Assembly (NCBI GenBank): GCA_028826165.1
Contig: JAPDFW010000067.1
Location: 62,001-126,000, forward strand
Length of the DNA: 64,000 nt
Reading direction: 5' to 3'
Source: Anaeramoeba ignava BMAN
Taxonomy: Eukaryota > Protista > Anaeramoebae
A model generated the notes under the pieces. The model worked only from the letters and a program-made list of their open reading frames with translations, made no database searches and had not been told where the DNA came from. Below are positions 10,201 to 59,250 of this stretch, in pieces (positions within the stretch are counted from its first letter, which is position 1; every line of letters begins with the position of its first letter). The position numbers and the translations under genes were made by a program.

Positions 10201-10681
10201 TCTTGAATAAATGATCTTTTTGCTTTTTGTAAATTGAAAGTAATCTAAATGTGTTTTGATTATCAGAAAGAACACAAATAGGATTTTTGGATGAAATAGA
10301 TGATTGTGTTTTTCCTCCTTGAAAAGTAAGTATAATATGTTTTTAACATTTTTCTTCCGTTTCTTTGATTTGACTCAATTCCAGAAATTTTCCATAAATA
10401 TCCTGAATCATCTTGAACACCAATTTTCTTTTCCCATTTTTTCATGTTGCTAATGCAGCTCTTCAAGAAAAGACGAATTTCCTTGAGGCAAAAAATCATT
10501 CGGACAATCTTGAAATCTTCCATTTTCCATTCTAATCACCCCCATCTTTTTCCAGGAAGAAAAAATTTCTTTTCTTTCTCTAAATCTGAATAATCGATTT
10601 CCTTTGAATGGCAAGAAAAAGTGCTCCTTTTCCATTTGAAATTCCCGGTCAAGCCAAAAAGATCCTCTGTCAGTTCCTGAC
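7288..10681 (-). pseudogene. CFAP44: 5'-truncated, indel-riddled copy of CFAP44
   Basis: Reverse complement of 20,277-23,796; fragments such as MKKPRNLLKP and DDSGYLWKISGIES; starts abruptly at LSGTDRGSF. Confidence 0.85.
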
Positions 10682-13600
10682 AGAAGAAAGAAGAATGAAA
10701 GAAGAAGAAATTGGTGGATTTTCAAGACATTGTGTTTTATCTTCATTTGGATGAGTTCCTGGTTCACAATATTCACAATAACTTTTTCCAATAAATGGAT
10801 TAAATTTTCCATCTTCACATTCAATGCAACATTCTTCACTTGTTTGTGTTGTTTTTGGATTATATGTTCCTGCTGGACATCCAATACATTCTCCTGATCC
10901 TTCACTTGAATAATATCCTGATGAACATGAAATACATCCTGTATGATTTTCATTTGAATAATATCCTGCTGAACATGGAATACATTCTTTTGAATAGTTA
11001 AATGAATAATATCCTGATGAACATAAACAACATTCTGTGTGATTTTCATTTGAATATGTTCCTGCTAAACAAGGAATACATTCATTTTTTTGTTTCAATG
11101 AATAATATCCATCTAAACAATCTAAACATTCTGTATGTTCTGGATTTGAAAATGTTCCTGCTGAACATCCAATACATTCTTCTGATCCTTCACTTGAATA
11201 ATATCCTGATGAACATAAAATACATTCTCCACTATTTTCATTTGAATAATATCCTGCTGAGCAATTTATACATTCTGTATGATTTTCATTTGAAAATGTT
11301 CCTGCTGAACATCCAATACATTCTCCTGATCCTTCACTTGAATAATATCCTGATGAACATGAAATACATCCTGTATGATTTTCATTTGAATAATATCCTG
11401 CTGAACAATTTATACATTCTGTGTGATTTTCATTTGAATAACTTCCATTATAACATGAAATACATTCACTTTTATTTTCATTTGAAATAGTTCCTTCAAA
11501 ACATTCTAAACAATATTTCCATCCTTCATTTGAATAATATCCTGATAAACATGGAATACATGATTCACTTGAATTTTGTCCTGTTTTGTTATTGAATGTT
11601 CCTGATAAACATTTAGAACATGAACTTGAACCATTTTGTTCTGAATATTCTCCATAATTACATTCTAAACATTCACTGCTTCCTCCTGTTGAATATGTAC
11701 CAGCTAAACATTCAATACATTCACTCCAACTTATTCCTGAATATCCTGCTTGGCAATTTTTTATTCTAATTAAAATACAATCTTGATTTCCTCCACTTTC
11801 TTCTTGATAACTTCCATTTGTTGTAATTAATGAATTTATTGAATATCCAGTTATTATTGGATTGTTTTCTTCATCAACATATATTTGATTAATAATTCCT
11901 CCAATACTTACATTTCCCAAATTTTCTTTTCCAAATTTATCAAAAATTACAAAAAATCCTCCTATTCCAAAATTATAGATTACATTTTCTAAATCAGGTA
12001 ACGTTCCACTTCCTGAAATTATAATTCTTTCTAATGTATCAATTTTTAATGAATTTATTTCAAAAATTTGTGTTGGATCTGGAGAAAAGAATGATGAGTA
12101 AAGTAAACTATTTCCATATTCATTAATTCTAAAAAATATTCCATTTATGAATCCACTTGATTCTTTTTGATATGCATCAGGTGTAGTTGGGAAATAAAAT
12201 GAACTTGTTTCACCTCCAACCCAAATTGTATTATTAGTTTTATCAATATCAATTGAATAACAATAATCATTTGAAGTACCTCCAAGAAATGTTGACCATT
12301 CAATTTCTAAATTGTTTGAATTAATTTTCATTATAAAACAATTTGAATATGAAGTACTTCCTGAAAAAATTGGTTGAATTACTGTTGAATTTGTTGGAAA
12401 ATCTTGTGATGTTGTATATCCAGTAATTGCTATATATTCTTTTTCTTCATAATATTTAAGACTCATTGGAATATCATCATAAATTCCTCCAAAACATCTT
12501 GTTTCAATTAATTCTTCTCCATTATTTTTTAATTCACAAATAAATCCATCATAAAAACCTTTGAAATCACATTTTGTTTGATTTTCTTCAGGAAAATAAC
12601 CATTTGTTTGACCAATAATAAATATATTATCATTTGAATCAATTTCAATTCCATTTGAATGAACAGCACTTTCACCACATAATAAAGTAGACCAAATAAT
12701 TGATTCTCCACTTGAATTAAATTTAGTAACGAATCCTGATTCTTGTTGACTTATACATTCTTTTTTATATGCATTTATTGATGTTGGGAAAATATCTTCA
12801 TCACTTGCATTATTTTTGAATGATTTTTCAGTATAACCAGTAATTATTGGATTTCCTTGTGAATCTAATTGGATATCAGATGGATATTCATTTAAACTTG
12901 TTCCAAATACAATAGACCATTCAGTTTCATTTCCAAATTCATTCATTTTCAAAAGAAAAATATCAAAATTTCCTTGAATATTTGTTGATTGATTATAAGA
13001 ACCATCAGTTATTGGGAAATCAATACTATTTGTATATCCTGTAATAATTGATTTTCCATTTAAATAACTTATTGCTTTTATTCCAATATCTGATGATGAT
13101 TTTCCAATATAAGTTGAATATTCTGGATCAATTATTAATATTTCTTTTGGATTTATTTCATCAAAATTAATTTGATATTTGATTTCAAATTGATTTGAAT
13201 TGTTTGATTTATGAATATCAAAATTTGCAAATGAATGAATATTTTTTTGATAAAATATTGGTTGAGATTCAATCAAAATTATTTCATTTCTTTCATTTTT
13301 AAGATACATTTCTCCATTTTTAACTTCAATTTTAAATTCTTTTTCTTTTTTTATCTTTTCATTTTGATTTTGAATTTGATTTTGATTTTGATTTTGATTT
13401 TGATTTTGATTTTGATTTTGATTTTGATTTTGATTTTGAATTTGATTTTGATTTTGATTTTGAATTTGAATTTGATTTTGATTTTGATTTTGATTTTGAT
13501 TTTGATTTTGATTTTGAATTTGAATTTGAATTTGATTTTGATTTTGATTTTGATTTTGAATTTGATTTTGATTTTGATTTTGATTTTGATTTTGATTTTG

Positions 13601-14552
13601 ATTTTGAATTGAGTTGGATGTTGATTTTGATGTTGATTTTGATGTTGATGTTGATGTTGATGTTGATGTTGATGTTGATGATGTTGATTTTGATTTTGAG
13701 AAAAATGAATAATTCCAAATGATATTTCGAAAATCAAATGGATTTTTGATAACAAATTTACTTTTTAAATTATTTGAATTTGAAATGAAGAAATGAAGAT
13801 CAATATTTGGATAAACATTTGAATAAATAATTTCTGAATAAGTTTGTAATCCAGTTTGATAGTTTTGATTATTTATTCCTTTGAAAATATTTGCTTTTGT
13901 TGAAGAAATATTAAAAGATTTTAAATTTTGTAAAGAAGAATTTTGAAGATTCATTTCAATAATTCCATTATTCATATCAAATATAATTTTTTGATTTGTA
14001 AAAAAAACATTTCCTCTTCCAAACATAATTGCTTGATATTTTATTTCTTTTGGTAAATTTCCTTCATTTTGAATTATTATTGTTGATAATTCTTTTTTAT
14101 TTTTTTGATTTTCTAATTTTTGAGAATGATTTGATGATTGAATTTGTTTTAATTTTCTTTAATTTAATCAAAAAAAAAAAAATGAAAATTAATAAAATTG
14201 AAAAAAATTAAAATCAAAATCAAATTTGAACAAATTCTTACAAATTAAATGAATCAAATGAATTAAATGAATTAAATGAATTAAATGAAGAATTAAATGA
14301 ATTAAATGAATTAAATGAAGAATTAAATGAATTAAATGAATCAAATGAATTAAATGAATTAAATGAATTAAATGAAGAATTAAATGAATTAAATGAATTA
14401 AATGAAGAATTAAATGAATCAAATGAATTAAATGAATCAAATGAAGAATGAAAGAAAGATAAATTCCAAAAAATATTCAAAATGAAAAATAAGAAGAATA
14501 AATTGTTAAAATTAAAAAGATCAAATAAAGATTTAAATTGAGATTTGTTCAT
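10670..14552 (-). CDS. Secreted/surface protein, ~1265 aa: signal-like N-terminus, (SFN)n repeat, SBBP-type beta-propeller, Cys-rich CxxCxxGxYS repeats; C-terminal hydrophobic tail truncated. Exons 14,552-14,242 and 14,156-10,670
   Basis: 1118-aa ORF plus 104-aa upstream ORF joined in frame by an 85-bp GTAAG...AAAG intron; IIDPEYSTYIG and ITGYTxSxDFP motifs; Cys-rich repeats. Confidence 0.85.
14244..14450 (-). repeat. Coding 9-bp TCATTT(A/G)AT repeat (SFN/SFD), ~68 aa
   Basis: Visible tandem repeat inside exon 1. Confidence 0.9.
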
Positions 14553-15285
14553 TTTTAAAAAAAAATTGAGAATAACTTTTCCTAAAAAATAGAAAAGAAA
14601 TTAAATTCCAAAATAGAAAAGAAAAAGAAATAAAAAAGAGAAAAAATAAATTTTTTTTTCTTTTAAAAGAAATATTTTATTATTTTATTGATCAAAATGA
14701 TCAGAAGAAAAAAATAGTTTTTAGTTTAAAATAGATTGTTTGTTTGATTATTTGATAATTTCTTTTTCTTCATTTTAATTCATTTCCAATTATTATTATT
14801 TTTATTATTTTTGAATTTTGATTTGGAATTAAACTTTTTTATTAGGAAATCCAACTGGAAGCAAAAAAAAAATGGATCAAATGATCTTTTTAAAATTTAA
14901 TTTGATTTTTTATTTTGATTATTTTATTTTTAATTTTTTTTTAATCAGAAAAATGGATCAAATGATCTTTTTATTTTTTTTTTTGGAATTATTGATTTTT
15001 TTTTTTTGGAATTATTGATTTTTTTTTTGATCTTGTTCAAAATTCAAATTTAAAAAATAAATTTAAAAAATAAATTTAAAAATAGATTTAAAAAATAGAT
15101 TTAAAAATAGATTTAAAAAATAAATTTAAAAAGATCGTTAAAGATTTTTTTTGTGATCAAATTATCAATAAAATAATAAAATATTTCTTTTAAAAGAAAA
15201 AAAAATTTTTATTATTTTTCATTTCTCTCTTTTATTTCTTTCCTTTCTATTTTATAGGAAAAGTTATTCTCAATTTTTTTTAAAA
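14553..15285. promoter_or_regulatory. Divergent promoter region between the two surface-protein paralogs; central ~430 bp unique
   Basis: Head-to-head ATGs at 14,552 and 15,286; short direct repeats ATGGATCAAATGATCTTTT x2, GGAATTATTGATTTT x2 and (A/G)ATTTAAAAAATA x~6. Confidence 0.6.
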
Positions 15286-18200
15286 ATGAACAAATCTCAA
15301 TTTAAATCTTTATTTGATCTTTTTAATTTTAACAATTTATTCTTCTTATTTTTCATTTTGAATATTTTTTGGAATTTATCTTTCTTTCATTCTTCATTTG
15401 ATTCATTTAATTCATTTGATTCATTTAATTCTTCATTTAATTCATTTAATTCATTTGATTCATTTAATTCATTTAATTCATTTAATTCATTTAATTCTTC
15501 ATTTAATTCATTTAATTCATTTAATTCTTCATTTAATTCATTTAATTCATTTAATTCTTCATTTGATTCATTTGATTCATTTAATTCATTTAATTCATTT
15601 GATTCATTTAATTCATTTAATTCATTTGATTCATTTAATTCATTTAATTCATTTAATTCATTTGATTCATTTAATTCATTTAATTCATTTAATTCATTTA
15701 ATTCATTTAATTCATTTAATTCATTTAATTCATTTGATTCATTTAATTCATTTAATTCATTTAATTCATTTAATTCATTTAATTCATTTAATTCTTCATT
15801 TAATTCATTTGATTCATTTGATTCATTTGATTCATTTAATTCATTTAATTCTTCATTTAATTCATTTGATTCATTTGATTCATTTAATTTGTAAGAATTT
15901 GTTCAAATTTGATTTTGATTTTAATTTTTTTCAATTTTATTAATTTTCATTTTTTTTTTTTTGATTAAATTAAAGAAAATTAAAACAAATTCAATCATCA
16001 AATCATTCTCAAAAATTAGAAAATCAAAAAAATAAAAAAGAATTACCAACAATAATAATTCAAAATGAAGGAAATTTACCAAAAGAAATAAAATATCAAG
16101 CAATTATGTTTGGAAGAGGAAATGTTTTTTTTACAAATCAAAAAATTATATTTGATATGAATAACGGAATTGTTGAAATGAATCTTCAAAATTCTTCTTT
16201 ACAAAATTTAAAATCTTTTAATATTTCTTCAACAAAAGCAAACATTTTCAAAGGAATAAATAATCAAAACTATCAAACTGGATTACAAACTTATTCAGAA
16301 ATTATTTATTCAAATGTTTATCCAAATATTGATCTTCATTTCTTCATTTCAAATTCAAATAATTTAAAAAGTAAATTTGTTATCAAAAATCCATTTGATT
16401 TTCAAAATATCATTTGGAATTATTCATTTTTCTCAAAATCAAAATCAACATCATCAACATCAACATCAACATCAACATCAACATCAACATCAACATCAAC
16501 ATCAAAATCAACATCAAAATCAACATCCAACTCAATTCAAAATCAAAATCAAAATCAAAATCAAATTCAAAATCAAAATCAAAATCAAAATCAAATTCAA
16601 ATTCAAATTCAAAATCAAAATCGAAATCAAAATCAAAATCAAAATCAAAATCAAATTCAAATTCAAAATCAAAATCAAAATCAAATTCAAAATCAAAATC
16701 AAAATCAAAATCAAAATCAAATTCAAAATCAAAATCAAATTCAAAATCAAAATCAAAATCAAAATGAAAAGATAAAAAAAGAAAAAGAATTTAAAATTGA
16801 AGTTAAAAATGGAGAAATGTATCTTAAAAATGAAAGAAATGAAATAATTTTGATTGAATCTCAACCAATATTTTATCAAAAAAATATTCATTCATTTGCA
16901 AATTTTGTTATTCATAAATCAAAAAATTCAAATCAATTTGAAATCAAATATCAAATTAATTTTGATGAAATAAATCCAAAAGAAATATTAATAATTGATC
17001 CAGAATATTCAACTTATATTGGAAAATCATCATTAGATATTGGAATAAAAGCAATAAGTTATTTAAATGGAGAATCAATTATTACAGGATATACAAATAG
17101 TATTGATTTCCCAATAACTGATGGTTCTTATAATCAATCAACAAATATTCAAGGAAATTTTGATATTTTTGTTTTAAAAATGAATGAATTTGGAAATGAA
17201 ACTGAATGGTCTATTGTATTTGGAACAAGTTTAAATGAATATCCATCTGATATCCAATTAGATTCACAAGGAAATCCAATAATTACTGGTTATACTGAAA
17301 AATCATTCAAAAATAATGCAAGTGATGAAGATATTTTCCCAACATCAATAAATGCATATAAAACAGAATGTATAAGTCAACAAGAATCAGGATTCGTTAC
17401 TAAATTTAATTCAAGTGGAGAATCAATTATTTGGTCTACTTTATTATGTGGTGAAAGTTTTGTTCATTCAAATGGAATTGAACTTGATTCAAATGATAAT
17501 ATATTTATTATTGGTCAAACAAATGGTTATTTTCCTGAAGAAAATCAAACAAAATGTGATTTCAAATTAAGATATGATGGATTTATTTGTGAATTAAAAA
17601 ATAATGGAGAAGAATTAATTGAAACAAGATGTTTTGGAGGAATTCATGATGATATTCCAATGAGTCTTAAATATTATGAAGAAAAAGAATATATAGCAAT
17701 TACTGGATATACAACATCACAAGATTTTCCAACAAATTCAACAGTAATTCAACCAATTTTTTCAGGAAGTACTTCATATTCAAATTGTTTTATAATGAAA
17801 ATTAATTCAAACAATTTAGAAATTGAATGGTCAACATTTCTTGGAGATATTTCAAATGATTATTGTTATTCAATTGATATTGATAAAACTAATAATACAA
17901 TTTGGGTTGGAGGTGAAACAAGTTCATTTTATTTCCCAACTACACCTGATGCATATCAAAAAGAATTAAGTGGATTAATAAATGGAATATTTTTCAGAAT
18001 TAATGAATATGGAAATAGTTTACTTTACTCATCATTCTTTTCTCCAGATCCAACACAAATTTTTGAAATAAATTCATTAAAAATTGATACATTAGAAAGA
18101 ATTATAATTTCAGGAAGTGGAACGTTACCTGATTTAGAAAATATAATCTATAATTTTGGAATAGGAGGATTTTTTGTAATTTTTGATAAATTTGGAAAAG

Positions 18201-19477
18201 AAAATTTGGGAAATGTAAGTATTGGAGGAATTATTAATCAAATATATGTTGATGAAGAAAACAATCCAATAATAACTGGATATTCAATAAATTCATTAAT
18301 TACAACAAATGGAAGTTATCAAGAAGAAAGTGGAGGAAATAAAGATTGTATTTTAATTAGAATAAAAAATTGCCAAGCAGGATATTCAGGAATAAGTTGG
18401 AGTGAATGTATTGAATGTTTAGCTGGTACATATTCAACAGGAGGAAGCAGTGAATGTTTAGAATGTAATTATGGAGAATATTCAGAACAAAATGGTTCAA
18501 GTTCATGTTCTAAATGTTTATCAGGAACATTCAATAACAAAACAGGGCAAAATTCAAGTGAATCATGTATTACATGTTTATCAGGATATTATTCAAATGA
18601 AGGATGGAAATATTGTTTAGAATGTTTTGAAGGAACTATTTCAAATGAAAATAAAAGTGAATGTATTTCATGTTATAATGGAAGTTATTCAAATGAAAAT
18701 CATACAGAATGTATAAATTGCTCAGCAGGATATTATTCAAATGAAAATCATACAGGATGTATTTCATGTTCATCAGGATATTATTCAAATGAAGGATCAG
18801 GAGAATGTATTGGATGTTCAGCAGGAACATTTTCAAATGAAAATCATACAGAATGTATAAATTGCTCAGCAGGATATTATTCAAATGAAAATAGTGGAGA
18901 ATGTATTTTATGTTCATCAGGATATTATTCAAGTGAAGGATCAGAAGAATGTACTGGATGTCCAGCAGGAACATTTTCAAATCCAGAACATACAGAATGT
19001 TTAGATTGTTTAGATGGATATTATTCATTGAAACAAAAAAATGAATGTATTCCTTGTTTAGCAGGAACATATTCAAATGAAAATCACACAGAATGTTGTT
19101 TATGTTCATCAGGATATTATTCATTTAACTATTCAAAAGAATGTATTCCATGTTCAGCAGGATATTATTCAAATGAAAATCATACAGGATGTATTTCATG
19201 TTCATCAGGATATTATTCAAATGAAGGATCAGGAGAATGTACTGGATGTCCAGCAGGAACATATAATCCAAAAACAACACAAACAAGTGAAGAATGTTGT
19301 ATTGAATGTGAAGATGGAAAATTTAATCCATTTATTGGAAAAAGTTATTGTGAATATTGTGAACCAGGAACACATCCAAATGAAGATAAAACACAATGCC
19401 TTGAAAATCCACCAATTTCTTCTTCTTTCATTCTTCTTTCTTCTTTTCCATTCTTTTTTCTTTTCTTTTTCTTTTAA
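15286..19477 (+). CDS. Secreted/surface protein, ~1368 aa: signal-like N-terminus, long (SFN)n repeat, SBBP-type beta-propeller with ST/QN insert, Cys-rich repeats, hydrophobic C-tail. Exons 15,286-15,890 and 15,976-19,477
   Basis: Intron 15,891-15,975 (GTAAG...TAAAG) joins the 202-aa ORF in frame to LKLKQ...IIQNEGNLPKEIKYQAIMFGRG; C-end SSFILLSSFPFFFLFFFF. Confidence 0.88.
15391..15888 (+). repeat. Coding 9-bp TCATTT(A/G)AT repeat (SFN/SFD), ~166 aa
   Basis: Visible tandem repeat inside exon 1. Confidence 0.9.
16435..16765 (+). repeat. Coding hexamer repeats (ACATCA)n = ST and (CAAAAT)n = QN; mirrored at ~13,365-13,700
   Basis: Visible in sequence and ORF translation. Confidence 0.9.
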
Positions 19478-53059: not shown

Positions 53060-54377
53060 TTAATAATTTCTTTTTCTTATTTTACAAATCTCAAAAATAT
53101 CATCAATTTCATTTTTGTTTCTGTGGTTGTTGAGTTTAACAAGATTTTCAAATCTTTTGTTTTTACTTTTTTTTCTTTTCTTTGAGATTTGTTCATCAAT
53201 TTCAATTTGTTGAGGAAGAGAATTAATAATTTGATTTTGAGGTTGTTGAATATTAATTGAGAAAGAAAAGGAGTTTTTATTTTTATTTTGATTTTGATTT
53301 TGATTTTGATTTTGATTTTGATTTTGATTTTTGATTTTGATTTTGATTTTCATTTTGATTTTCATTTTGATTATTTGTTGAAATATTCCATTTTTCAATA
53401 GTCTTTTCCTGTTTGATTGAATCTTCCTTTTTCATAATAGATTCTTCTTTTCTCATTTCAAATTCCCCCAAATCTTCGTTTTCTGTTGAAAAAACATGGT
53501 TATAAACAGAGGAATTTCCATATTTAATTGCGCAATTTTTCAATTGCAAAAGATTCTTTTTGCGTTGGAATTCAGTTCCTAAAAATCTTTCAAGTGGCAT
53601 TTCTATTATTTGCATAAATTGTTGTTTGAATAAAAAAAGTTCTTGAAAAGAAGAAGGTTTTTTTTTGTTCTTCAAATTTTGGTTTGATTGAAGTTGATAA
53701 TTCAAGCATTTTGAAGCCTCTCCAAGCAAATAAAAAGAATCCACAAAATCCATTTGCAAAGTTTTTGATTTGTTGATGAATTTGAGATAAAACTGAAACA
53801 CAAACTAGTGAAAAAATGCCATAAAATGTGTTTGTCGAATTAAAAATTTCAAATCTTTGAAACGAATCAATAATTGATTCAATAAATTTTTCATAAGAAG
53901 AGCTCCTGAGAAAGCAATTTGATTCGAAATAACTTCACAATATATAAATCTGGTGTTTGTAAATTTGTGTTTTTCGAATCACTTCATTTTCTTGAAATAT
54001 TTTTGTATTTTAACTGCAAATTCAGAAATATTCAACTCAAATAATCTTTGGAGTGTTTTTTTAACTTCAGTTAATTTTTGAAGATGCTTTGTTTTTTTAT
54101 GTTGGTTTTTTTTTGTGTAAATTAGTTTTTTTATTAACTGGAAATTTCCTTCCAATTCATTTATTTTTTGATTTGTTTTTTCTTTAAATTCAAAAAATAA
54201 TTCTTTTAAAAAAATGTAAAAAATATGAAAATCTTTTCTTTTCAATAATTTTTTTGGATGAAAAGATAAAATTTGAGGTTGAAATAAATATTGGGAATTA
54301 TTTTGAATAAATTCCCAATTAAATTTTGATTCAATTGAATTTAAAATTGAATAAAATTGCAAATCATTTGAATTCAT
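53060..54377 (-). CDS. NEPRO/RMP64 (yeast Rmp1-like, DUF4477) RNase MRP subunit-like protein; frameshifted
   Basis: FQLIKKLIYTKKNQHKKTKHLQKLTEVKKTLQRL resembles the Rmp1/NEPRO NKNQH motif; manual reframing gives LLSGALLM...QTHFMAFSLVCVSVLSQI, like the second conserved block; 3' end uncertain. Confidence 0.55.
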
Positions 54378-54461
54378 TTTAAAAAAAAAAAGAAAAAAAT
54401 GAAAAAGAAAAAAAATGAAAAAAAAAAAAAAATTTTTTTTATTTAAATAATTTAATAAATA

Positions 54462-54760
54462 AATTATCACAACCACAAGGCTCGAAATAAGGTTTAAAAA
54501 CTTATTTCGCTTCCTATTTTTAATGTAGATTGTTTTTGTTTACGCTCAATATTATGTGTGTATATTTGTATTTTGTTTTGGCAGATACTCAATTATTGAA
54601 TAATAAAGTATCTGTGGCAGTTGAGCGATTTCATTTCTGATTCTTCATCCTTCACGGCTCTATTTAAAAACAAACAAAACAAAGAAAATTAATTAATTTT
54701 TTTATTTAATTTATTTTTATTATTTTATTATTTAATTAATTAATCTACCTGTGAAGAATA
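54462..54760 (-). ncRNA. Candidate structured RNA (or structured 5' leader) with an 89-bp GT-AG intron at 54,748-54,660
   Basis: GC-enriched island with no long ORF; helices CGCTCAA/TTGAGCG, CAGATACT/AGTATCTG, CGAAATAAG/CTTATTTCG; CAG|GTAGAT...pyrimidine tract...TAG| splice signals. Confidence 0.55.
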
Positions 54761-54829
54761 AAAAAAATTAAAAAAAATTTTTTTTTCTTTTTAAATTTAT
54801 TTACACGTGTTTTAATCCTTTTTTATTTA

Positions 54830-57800
54830 TTAATTAATACTATTTTAATTTAATATTTAATTATAAAATTAATTTAAAAATTAATTTTATTAATTATTTT
54901 TTATTAATAAATATTTATTATTATTATTAATTTTTAATTAATTATTTAATAAAATATTTAAATAAATTTATTTTATTAATTAATATTATTTTAATTTAAT
55001 ATTTAATTATAAAAATTAATTTAAAAATTAATTTATTAATTATTTTATTATTAAATATTTATTATTATTAATTTTTGATTAAATATTTAATTAAAATATT
55101 TTAATAATTTTATTTTATTAATTAATACTATTTTAATTTAATATTTAATTATAAAATTAATTTAAAAATTAATTTATTAAATAATTTATTATTAAATATT
55201 TATTATTATTGTTAATTTTTTTTGATTAAATATTTTAATAAAATATTTTAATAAATTTATTTTAATAATTAATATTATTTTGATTTAATATTTAATTATA
55301 AAATTAATTTAAAATTAATTTATTAATAATTTTATTATTAAATATTTATTATTATTATTAATTTTTGATTAAATATTTAATAAAAATATTCAAATGAATT
55401 TATTTAAATAATTAATATTATTTTAATTTAATATTTAATTATAAAATTAATTTATTATTAATTTATTAATTAATTTATTATTAAATATTTATTATTATTA
55501 TTAATTTTTGATTAATTATTTAATTAAATATTTTAAATAATTTTATTTTATTAATTAATATTATTTTTAATTTAATATTTAATTATAAAAATTATTTTAA
55601 AATTAATTTATTAATTATTTTATTATTAAATATTTATTATTATTATTAATTTTTGATTAAATATTTAATAAAATATTTAAATAATTTTATTTTAATAATT
55701 AATATTATTTTAATTTAATATTTAATTATAAAATTAATTTAAAATTAATTTATTAATTATTTTATTATTAATTACTTATTATTATTATTAATTTTTGATT
55801 AAATATTTAATTAAATATTTAAATAAATTTGATTTTAAATAATTAATATTATTTTAATTTAATATTTAATTATAAAAAATTAATTTATTATTAATTTATT
55901 AATAATTTATTATTAAATATTTATTATTATTATTAATTTTTGATTAAATATTTAATAAAATATTTTAAATAAATTTTATTTTATTAATTAATATTATTTT
56001 GATTTAATATTTAATTATAAAATTAATTTAAAAATTAATTTATTTATTAATAATTTTATTATTAAATATTTATTATTATTATTAATTTTTGATTAAATAT
56101 TTAATAAAATATTTTTAATAAATTTATTTTAATAATTAATACTATTTTAATTTAATATTTAATTATAAAAATAATTTAAAATTAATTTATTAATTATTTT
56201 ATTATTAATTACTTATTATTATTAATAATTTTTGATTAAATATTTAATTAAATATTTAAATAATTTTTATTTTATTAATTAATACTATTTTTAATTTAAT
56301 ATTTTTAATTATAAAATTAATTTAAAATTAATTTATTAATTATTTTATTATTAATTATTTATTATTATTATTAATTTTTAACTAAATATTTAATTAAATA
56401 TTTAAAATAAATTTATTTTATTAATTAATACTATTTTAATTTTTAATAATTAATTATAAAAATAATTTAAAATTATTTTATTAATTATTTTATTATTAAA
56501 TATTTAATATTATTATTAATTTTTGATTAAATATTTAAATAAAATATTTTAATAATTTTATTTTAATAATTAATACTATTTTAATTTAATATTTAATTAT
56601 AAAATTAATTTAAAATTAATTTATTAATTATTTTATTATTAATTATTTATTATTATTATTATTAATTTTTGATTAAATATTTAATTAAATATTTAAATAA
56701 ATTTATTTTATTAATTAATATTATTTTTAATTTAATATTTAATTATAAAAATAATTTAAAATTAATTTATTAAATAATTTTATTATTAAATATTTATTAT
56801 TATTATTAATTTTTGATTAAATATTTAATTAAATATTTTAATAATTTTATTTTATTAATTAATACTATTTTAATTTAATATTTTAATTATAAAAATAATT
56901 TAAAATTAATTTATTAATAATTTATTATTAAATATTTATTATTATTATTAATTTTTGATTAAATATTTAAATAAATATTTTAATAATTTTATTTTATTAA
57001 TTAATATTATTTTAATTTAATGTTTAATTATAAAAATAATTTAAAATTAATTTATTATTAATAAATTTATTATTAAATATTTATTATTATTATTAATTTT
57101 TTTTGACTAAATATTTAATAAAAATATTTTAATAAATTTATTTTAATAATTAATATTATTTTGATTTAATATTTAATTATAAAATTAATTTAAAAATTAA
57201 TTTATTAATAATTTTATTATTAAATATTTAATATTATTATTATTAATTTTTAACTAAATATTTAATTAAATATTTTAATAAATTTATTTTATTAATTAAT
57301 ATTATTTTAATTTAATATTTAATTATAAAATTAATTTTAAAATTAATTTATTAATAAATTTTATTATTATTTACTTATTATTATTATTAATAATTTTTGA
57401 TTAAATATTTAATAAAATATTTAAAATAAATTTATTTTTAATAATTAATATTATTTTTAATTTAATATTTAATTATAAAATTAATTTAAAATTAATTTAT
57501 TAAATAATTTATTATTAAATATTTATTATTATTATTAATTTTTAATTAATTATTTAATAAAATATTTAAATAAATTTATTTTAATAATTAATACTATTTT
57601 TAATTTAATATTTAATTATAAAAATAATTTAAAATTATTTTATTAATAATAATTTTATTATTAAATATTTATTATTATTATTAATTTTTGATTAAATATT
57701 TAATAAAATATTTTAAATAAATTTATTTTAATAATTAATATTATTTTTAATTTATTTAATATTTAATTATAAAATTAATTTAAAATTAATTTATTAATTA

Positions 57801-59250
57801 TTTTATTATTAAATATTTATTATTATTATTAATTTTTGATTAAATATTTAATAAAATATTTTATTAATTTTATTTTATTAATTAATATTATTTTAATTTA
57901 ATAATTATAAAATTAATTTAAAAATTATTTTATTAATAATTTTATTATTAAATATTTATTATTATTATTAATTTTTGATTAAATATTTAATAAAAATATT
58001 TTAATAAATTTATTTTAATAATTAATATTATTTTAATTTAATTTTTAATTTAAAATTAATTTTAAAATTAATTTATTAATTATTTTATTATTAAATATTT
58101 ATTATTATTATTAATTTTTGATTAAATATTTAATAAAATATTTTATTAATTTTATTTTATTAATAATTAATATTATTTTAATTTTAATATTTAATTATAA
58201 AATTAATTTAAAATTAATTTATTAATAATTTTATTATTAAATATTTATTATTATTATTAATTTTTGATTAAATATTTAATAAAATATTTAAATAAATTTA
58301 TTTTTATTAATTAATATTATTTTTAATTTAATTTTTAATTTAAAATTAATTTATTAATTATTTTATTATTAATTTTTATTATTAATTACTTATTATTATT
58401 ATTAATTTTTGACTAAATATTTAATAAAAATATTTTAATAAATTTATTTTTATTAATTAATACTATTTTAATTTAATATTTAATTATAAAAATAATTTAA
58501 AAATTAATTTATTAATAATTTTTATTATTAAATATTTATTATTATTAATTTTTTTGATTAAATATTTAATAAAATATTTTAATAATTTTATTTTAATAAT
58601 TAATATTATTTTGATTTAATATTTAATTATAAAAATAATTTAAAATTATTTTATTAATTATTTTATTATTAAATATTTATTATTATTATTAATTTTTAAC
58701 TAAATATTTAATAAAATATTTAAATAAATTTATTTTTATTAATTAATATTATTTTAATTTAATATTTTAATTTAAAAATTAATTTATTAATTATTTTTTT
58801 ATTATTAATTATTTATTATTATTTTACTTATTATTATTATTAATTTTTGATTAAATATTTAATAAAAATATTTAAATAAATTTATTTTATTAATTAATAT
58901 TATTTTAATTTAATATTTAATTATAAAATTAATTTAAAAAATTATTTTATTATTAATTTTATTATTAAAAATATTTATTATTATTATTAATTTTTGATTA
59001 AATATTTAATTAAATATTTAAATAAATTTATTTTAATAATTAATATTATTTTAATTTAATATTTAATTATAAAATTAATTTAAAATTAATTTATTAATTA
59101 TTTTATTATTAAATATTTATTATTATTATTAATTTTTTTGATTAAATATTTAATAAAATATTTAAATAATTTTATATTATTAATTAATATTATTTTAATT
59201 TAATTTTTAATTATAAAATTAATTTATTAATTATTTTATTATTAATTATT
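54830..59250. repeat. ~144-bp unit, ~99% AT satellite, about 30 copies
   Basis: Landmark TTTTTGATT G at 55,077, 55,224, 55,367, 55,510, 55,655, 55,797, 55,942 (spacing 142-147). Confidence 0.9.

Follow-up and report, generated by a model that had tools for sequence, protein, structure and literature searches.

A candidate intron-containing gene for a small structured RNA upstream of a NEPRO (RMP64)-like gene in Anaeramoeba ignava

Introduction

The yeast U3 genes SNR17A/B and the U6 gene of Schizosaccharomyces pombe are small RNA genes that carry a spliceosomal intron near their 5' end. Structure and introns are likewise combined in the yeast RPL30 and RPS14B pre-mRNAs, whose structured, intron-containing leaders are autoregulatory. 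Other structured RNAs are recognized by the order and spacing of their parts. In box H/ACA RNAs, a spacing of 14-16 nt separates the top of the pocket from the H or ACA box, and the ACA is 3 nt from the mature 3' end. Ciliate telomerase RNA, the product of a Pol III gene, has an enclosing helix, an internal hairpin, a single-stranded stretch and a long 3' hairpin. The Anaeramoebae are a deep branch of metamonads and, to our knowledge, almost nothing is known of their non-coding RNAs.

The genome of Anaeramoeba ignava BMAN is 80.65% A+T and 19.36% G+C and holds 32,108 introns, or 0.74 per kb, which implies a genome of about 43 Mb (PMC11550330). Here we analyze a window of 64 kb, the whole stretch of DNA considered, in which an earlier note had singled out a small island on the minus strand as an unannotated structured RNA with an intron. 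We tentatively read this island as a gene in its own right, interrupted by one intron, whose product would be a small non-coding RNA, structured and about 210 nt long once spliced, an interpretation drawn from sequence and predicted folding to which we give somewhat less than an even chance.

Results

Within a window of 19.8% G+C, the minus-strand interval 54760-54462 is a G+C island, with 26-29% G+C measured over 54450-54650. This compares with 0-3% from 54850 upward, upstream of the candidate, and with 9-15% in the spacer below the island. Neither strand of the candidate has an open frame, and peptides that start with ATG reach no more than 5 and 13 aa, as befits the description of an island free of long ORFs in near-pure A+T surroundings. 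Two upstream ORFs are present, encoding MKNQK-stop and MKSLNCHRYFIIQ-stop. All sequences quoted in the earlier note were found at their minus-strand positions, and its description of the sequence is accurate.

Read in the direction of the minus strand, the locus opens with promoter-like elements at 54818-54796, comprising GGATTAAAA (54818-54810), CACGTG (54809-54804) and a TATA-like TAAATAAA (54803-54796). A tract of A9, T8, AA and T7 (54795-54761) lies between the TATA-like element and putative exon 1, TATTCTTCACAG (54760-54749), which would provide the 5' strand of the first helix and whose true start may lie a few nucleotides further upstream, within the T-run. A putative spliceosomal intron (54748-54660; GTAGAT...TTTTCTTTGTTTTGTTTGTTTTTAAATAG, ending in AAATAG) separates exon 1 from putative exon 2 (54659-54462), a structured body of 198 nt that begins with AGCCGTGAAGGATG. 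Next come a spacer that resembles a core promoter when its layout is compared with histone H2B promoters (54470-54378) and, on the same strand, a NEPRO (RMP64)/RMP1-like gene (54377-53080), identified by Pfam.

On the upstream side, a 4.4-kb satellite of near-pure A+T (window 54822-59241; period about 146 bp, 30 copies, 89% identity) directly adjoins the promoter-like elements, ending at GGATTAAAA-CACGTG-TAAATAAA. A+T repeat stretches resembling this satellite were matched on contigs C77, C142, C64, C104, C101 and C82.

The putative intron is 89 nt long with GT-AG boundaries, contains only 7 G/C bases (7.9% G+C) and has a T-rich tract ahead of AAATAG. Published A. ignava BMAN introns have a modal length of 76 nt and a mean G+C content of 8.14%, and 99.8% of them are GT-AG (supplement of PMC11550330). 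In boundaries, length and G+C content the candidate intron is typical for the genome, and the clean minus-strand splice signals described earlier are borne out. Introns are so frequent here that their presence in a leader, or in a non-coding RNA made by Pol II, would be unsurprising. A crude intron-consensus scan of the 64-kb window found too few introns to be of use.

Across the intron, exon 1 is complementary to the beginning of exon 2, with UAUUCUUCAC pairing with GUGAAGGAUG (54655-54646) in a helix of 10 bp (helix 1). Such a match was reached by 0.2% of shuffled exon 1 sequences (P about 0.002), and the helix could be extended to 15 bp into the upstream T-run if transcription starts there. 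This pairing had been presented as a hairpin created by splicing. The 10-bp helix across the junction stands, but the same helix forms with or without removal of the intron, and it is therefore an argument for a transcript that includes both sides rather than for splicing.

Exons 1 and 2 were joined by window coordinates, for folding only, into a spliced RNA of 210 nt, and fold significance was expressed as z against dinucleotide shuffles (n = 300). Searches, by contrast, used the exons individually. On the minus strand, three hairpins form in the spliced RNA, with an energy of -44.1 kcal/mol (z = -4.44), and none of the 300 shuffles was equally stable. Its reverse complement, representing the plus strand, gave z = -2.58, and exon 2 alone gave z = -2.65. 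Several G-U pairs in the fold are workable on the minus strand only, which fixes the RNA strand as minus and agrees with the strand-limited U-G pairs noted before.

Beyond helix 1, the MFE and centroid folds both contain hairpin 2 (54627-54543), whose CA-rich 3' loop strand measures 32 nt, a 9-nt hinge, UAAACAAAA (54542-54534), and hairpin 3 (54533-54469), after which the sequence runs into the tail GAUAAUU (54468-54462). Five separate helices of 7-10 bp make up the candidate fold. Folding of the spliced minus-strand RNA reproduced exactly the arrangement that the earlier note had drawn, with a cross-junction helix, a long hairpin, a hinge and a second hairpin. Two finer points of that drawing hold only in part. 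AAACAA is indeed present in the hinge as an ANANNA match, but one is nearly expected by chance in nine A-rich nucleotides. The proposed 3' end of AUA plus 3 nt does have AUA at 54467-54465, but the end at 54462 was picked to fit the 3 nt, and AUA is not the canonical ACA.

A search of the whole window against Rfam 15 at gathering thresholds, covering families such as the snRNAs, U3, SRP, 7SK, Y and vault RNAs and riboswitches, gave no matches. With E values of up to 10, the region 54300-54900 and exon 2 alone returned chance hairpin matches only, of at most 22 bits compared with thresholds of 50-90, consistent with the reported absence of known-family hallmarks. The test for RNase P/MRP RNA (the P4 pseudoknot from CR-I and CR-V, and the Rfam model) likewise produced nothing in Rfam with E values of up to 10. 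The genome's RNase MRP RNA lies elsewhere (C2:716055-716341, 54.4 bits in Rfam). Local alignment of the candidate to it gave no significant similarity, and the idea that the candidate mimics MRP RNA was rejected on this result. U2, U5 and a U3-like gene are also located elsewhere, the last at 30.6 bits, below the Rfam cut-off. Words that look like a C/D box, an Sm site, a K-turn, U1, U6 or U6atac (for example ACAGAG at the junction, and AAGGAUGAA) were dropped by eye, as their arrangement is wrong and Rfam is silent.

Relatives of the candidate were sought with a covariance model (R1; 169 nt, 42 pairs) and by a DNA search of the 42.8-Mb assembly, which together found only the two arms of an inverted duplication, described below. 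When metagenomes were scanned with a 20-mer taken from hairpin 2, two matches came up, both G+C-rich, only 20-21 nt long and attributable to chance. Word-index protein searches with the intact-arm NEPRO-like protein yielded no usable orthologues.

The candidate starts with UAUUCUUCAC and carries UGAAGAAU, and the MRP RNA (C2:716055-716341) starts with CAUUCUUCUAG and ends with CUAGAAGAAU. An AUUCUUC/GAAGAAU terminal helix is common to the MRP RNA and the candidate (54760-54638). We regard it as a curiosity only, because 7-mers shared by these two RNAs are expected by chance.

A full-length U2 gene lies at C13:508571-508783, and two identical 127-nt U2-like genes (52 bits; C57:254345-254471 and C67:346616-346742) keep the 5' half of U2 and have no 3' domain. 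All three are preceded by CCATAA about 55-68 nt upstream; this snRNA-type upstream motif is absent from the candidate. The nuclear rRNA (L011:367-6601, C26) is extremely A+T-rich, with an SSU of 2266 nt at 27.8% G+C and an LSU of 3638 nt at 26.9%, and the internal spacers of the rDNA are very short, at about 76 and 82 nt.

Histone genes of the genome share a common layout, in which a TTGGATAAT-type motif is followed by TATA-like TTTAAATAAAA, T-runs broken by CATTTTT, a short A/T leader and the ATG. The spacer before the NEPRO-like ATG reads GTGATAAT, TTATTTAAATAAAAAAAA, T15 CATTTTTTTT, further T-runs, AAA and then ATG, and it overlays the H2B promoters nearly element for element, with the motif at -93 versus -91. 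Upstream of the candidate, GGATTAAAA lies at -58, followed by the TATA-like element and T-runs. The order of GGAT(T/A)A motif, TATA-like element and T-runs is found at the candidate, at the histone H2A, H2B and H3 genes and at U2, although promoter comparisons made in near-pure A+T DNA are soft evidence.

We infer that the elements at 54796-54818 are the promoter of the candidate. The NEPRO-like gene very probably starts transcription below the candidate, to judge by its spacer. With a complete TATA and T-run layout in the 85-nt spacer, this gene could do without a leader supplied by the candidate, and the two layouts favor tandem transcription units over a 5' leader. As the spacer shares the histone promoter layout, the supposed AUA plus 3 nt tail sits in a promoter-like motif, overlapping GATAAT of the NEPRO-like gene. 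The same spacer contains AATAAA, which might in addition provide the candidate with a poly(A) signal.

Among the H3, H2A and H2B genes themselves, an upstream motif, AAATTATTGGATAATATTTGATTAA, is common to all, and a 3' flank motif, AATTTGAAATAAAAA, is found in most. AAATTATTGGATAATATTTGATTAA is likely a histone promoter element and AATTTGAAATAAAAA is likely a histone 3'-end signal.

The earlier identification of the neighbor as RMP64-like is confirmed, with the NEPRO_N domain scoring 42 bits in the intact arm copy, above the Pfam cut-off, and the ATG at 54377. In the window arm, the gene has frameshifts and in-frame TGA (53981-53979) and TAG (53807-53805) codons; the copy in the other arm (L002:1903-3189) has an intact 429-aa frame. 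The frequency with which indels in the gene restore the frame is about that of a random walk and gives no indication of selection.

These arms, each more than 30 kb long, belong to an inverted duplication in which window 30754-62499 has its mirror image at C68:61992-31064, with about 95% identity and differences that are mostly single-base indels. The candidate has its second copy at C68:38599-38938, inverted and 98-100% identical. We rejected this copy as a sign of selection, since it is the other arm of the duplication and not independent. Between the arms, the RNA exons have 0 differences in 210 nt versus about 1.7% in the NEPRO-like gene, an identity that mainly indicates that the sequence is reliable. 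The identical copies may represent a single locus. The A. ignava assembly is Nanopore-based, with the 1D2 kit included (PMC11550330), which makes a fold-back artefact possible, and the inverted duplication may be either a real palindrome or an artefact of this kind. The center of the duplication lies near window 15066, between head-to-head SBBP-propeller genes (10670-19477) with identical upstream regions.

Discussion

The original proposal, that the minus strand encodes an unannotated RNA with a structure and an intron, is supported by base composition, fold statistics, strand asymmetry, the features of the intron, the promoter-like region upstream and the lack of a matching Rfam family. The more specific identities offered with it fare less well, as the H/ACA interpretation fails most of the informative tests and the leader interpretation is weakened.

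From the sequence features, fold statistics, strand bias and promoter-like layouts described above, we infer a model for the transcription, splicing, ends and possible function of the RNA. Pol II would transcribe the candidate as a unit of its own, and one 89-nt spliceosomal intron near the 5' end would be removed to leave about 210 nt. The mature RNA would consist of a 5' hairpin across the junction and two long hairpins joined by an A-rich hinge, the first of them with a large CA-rich single strand. It would most likely work in trans by scaffolding a small nuclear or nucleolar RNP, and would be snoRNA-like in outline while having no demonstrable part as a pseudouridylation guide. Its 3' end would abut, and may overlap, the promoter of the NEPRO/RMP64-like gene. 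The closeness of the ATG, 85 nt away on the same strand, would still allow read-through or an alternative isoform with a long leader.

A long isoform of this kind is the basis of the main rival to a separate gene, which we consider unlikely, though a serious contender. The candidate would be the spliced, structured 5' leader of a long NEPRO/RMP64-like mRNA, with uORFs and hairpins that control translation or stability, possibly as feedback in the RNase MRP pathway. As the earlier note had it when suggesting a leader of the RMP64-like gene, the two share a strand and the ATG at 54377 is only 85 nt below 54462, across an A/T spacer. At 0.74 introns per kb (PMC11550330), introns in 5' UTRs are to be expected, and the two short upstream ORFs would suit a regulatory leader. 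This reading is weakened by the complete core-promoter layout that lies in between, where the histone-like TATA and T-runs predict a start site downstream of the candidate, and by the AATAAA between the candidate RNA and the ATG. Two uATGs and a structure of about -44 kcal/mol would also strongly inhibit translation, and the RNA has no significant similarity to the genome's MRP RNA. It is improbable, in turn, that the island yields no stable RNA, being instead a DNA-level element, for instance an enhancer or insulator where the 4.4-kb satellite ends, or a decaying exon remnant, with folds that are incidental. The locus is unique, having no paralogues, and the window has other ORF-poor G+C islands, both of which are in keeping with such an origin. 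However, an RNA is favored by the z of -4.4 and the strand asymmetry of the fold, by its five separate helices of 7-10 bp and by the cross-intron pairing (P about 0.002), and under the extreme A+T pressure of this genome an unconstrained island should decay.

If an RNA is made, it could in principle belong to a known class. We think it quite improbable that the candidate is a true box H/ACA RNA (snoRNA or scaRNA) extended at its 5' end by a spliced segment, bound by Cbf5/dyskerin and acting as a pseudouridylation guide or as a chaperone of the snR30/U17 type. The likeness is mostly one of shape. It comprises the hairpin-hinge-hairpin-tail outline in the MFE and centroid folds, the AAACAA and ACAAAA words in the hinge UAAACAAAA, whose match to ANANNA carries little information in so A-rich a stretch, an AUA one nucleotide beyond the 3' hairpin, and a 3' pocket 15 nt from AUA that, as read from the sequence, exists only if the 3-bp AGG/CCU helix opens. 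Against it, no ACA follows hairpin 3, only the AUA at 54467-54465, which lies inside the promoter-like GATAAT of the next gene, and the pocket of the 5' hairpin is 40 nt from the H box, beyond the 14-16 nt range. Targets were sought in the genome's own rDNA (SSU of 2266 nt, 5.8S, and LSU of 3638 nt), and no bipartite guide target of at least 8 bp was found in the SSU, 5.8S or LSU. When one mismatch per arm was allowed and the U2, U5 and U3-like RNAs were included with the rRNA, matches equaled those of shuffled guides. A search for a long antisense match to the rDNA unit gave nothing beyond chance, and the m1/m2 motifs of snR30 are absent from the candidate. We do not file it as an H/ACA RNA; on the predicted fold, it may act as a two-hairpin RNP scaffold. 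An identity as telomerase RNA is very improbable indeed. The CA-rich strand CCAAAACAAAAUAC... (54577-54546) after a boundary hairpin would then be the template, with CGCUCAA/UUGAGCG enclosing it and hairpin 3 in the role of ciliate stem IV. The order of elements is like that of ciliate telomerase RNA. A TERT gene family is listed for Anaeramoeba (supplement of PMC11550330). Yet none of the 40 contig ends searched has a telomere repeat against which a template could be matched; arrays of (TTTTG)n, which is complementary to CAAAACAAAA, occur only at internal positions and are as common as a reversed control; and the candidate has no C-runs and no predicted pseudoknot. The telomerase interpretation has no positive support.

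A bolder form of the separate-gene interpretation would make the candidate the first of a lineage-specific class in the Anaeramoebae. In this form, a spliced Pol II RNA of nucleolar type, whether an H/ACA derivative that is no longer a guide or a new scaffold, would be functionally coupled to NEPRO/RMP64, for example by shared regulation or by the AUUCUUC/GAAGAAU terminal helix shared with MRP RNA. We give this only a small chance.

At present the locus is only a well-formed computational candidate. If it is a true small RNA gene, it would add to the few known with an intron, be sited beside a gene for an RNase MRP-specific protein, and could point to a new nucleolar RNP. If it is instead the long leader of the neighboring mRNA, it would be an ordinary 5' UTR, though an unusually structured one.

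Among known systems, box H/ACA snoRNAs and scaRNAs resemble the candidate in having two long hairpins, an A-rich ANANNA hinge and a short tail, here with an AUA triplet, and in the size of that part, about 170 nt; a spacing of 15 nt between pocket and box in the 3' hairpin would be a further likeness if the AGG/CCU helix opens. Unlike them, the candidate lacks an ACA, has its 5' pocket at 40 nt and its 3' pocket shut by a 3-bp helix, and bears a 44-nt 5' extension that contains the intron, and no rRNA or snRNA target was found for it. With ciliate telomerase RNA it shares a similar size and the order of its parts, in which a helix encloses an internal hairpin and then a CA-rich single strand, and a long 3' hairpin comes last, but it differs in its intron, in a promoter-like region of Pol II type and in having no predicted pseudoknot.

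The RPL30 and RPS14B leaders are comparable in that a helix lies beside splice sites and that the gene downstream, on the same strand, encodes an RNA-binding nucleolar protein. Here, however, the downstream gene has a promoter layout of its own, the helix links two exons and does not hide the 5' splice site, and the candidate bears no resemblance to MRP RNA, the known RNA partner of the NEPRO-like protein. For the separate gene that we tentatively propose, SNR17A/B and S. pombe U6 offer a parallel. The candidate is unlike yeast U3 in having no boxes A, B, C, C' or D, and unlike S. pombe U6 in having no ACAGAGA/AGC/ISL arrangement. Like these genes, it would combine a very short exon 1 with a GT-AG intron of mRNA type, a structured body and a promoter-like region of its own.
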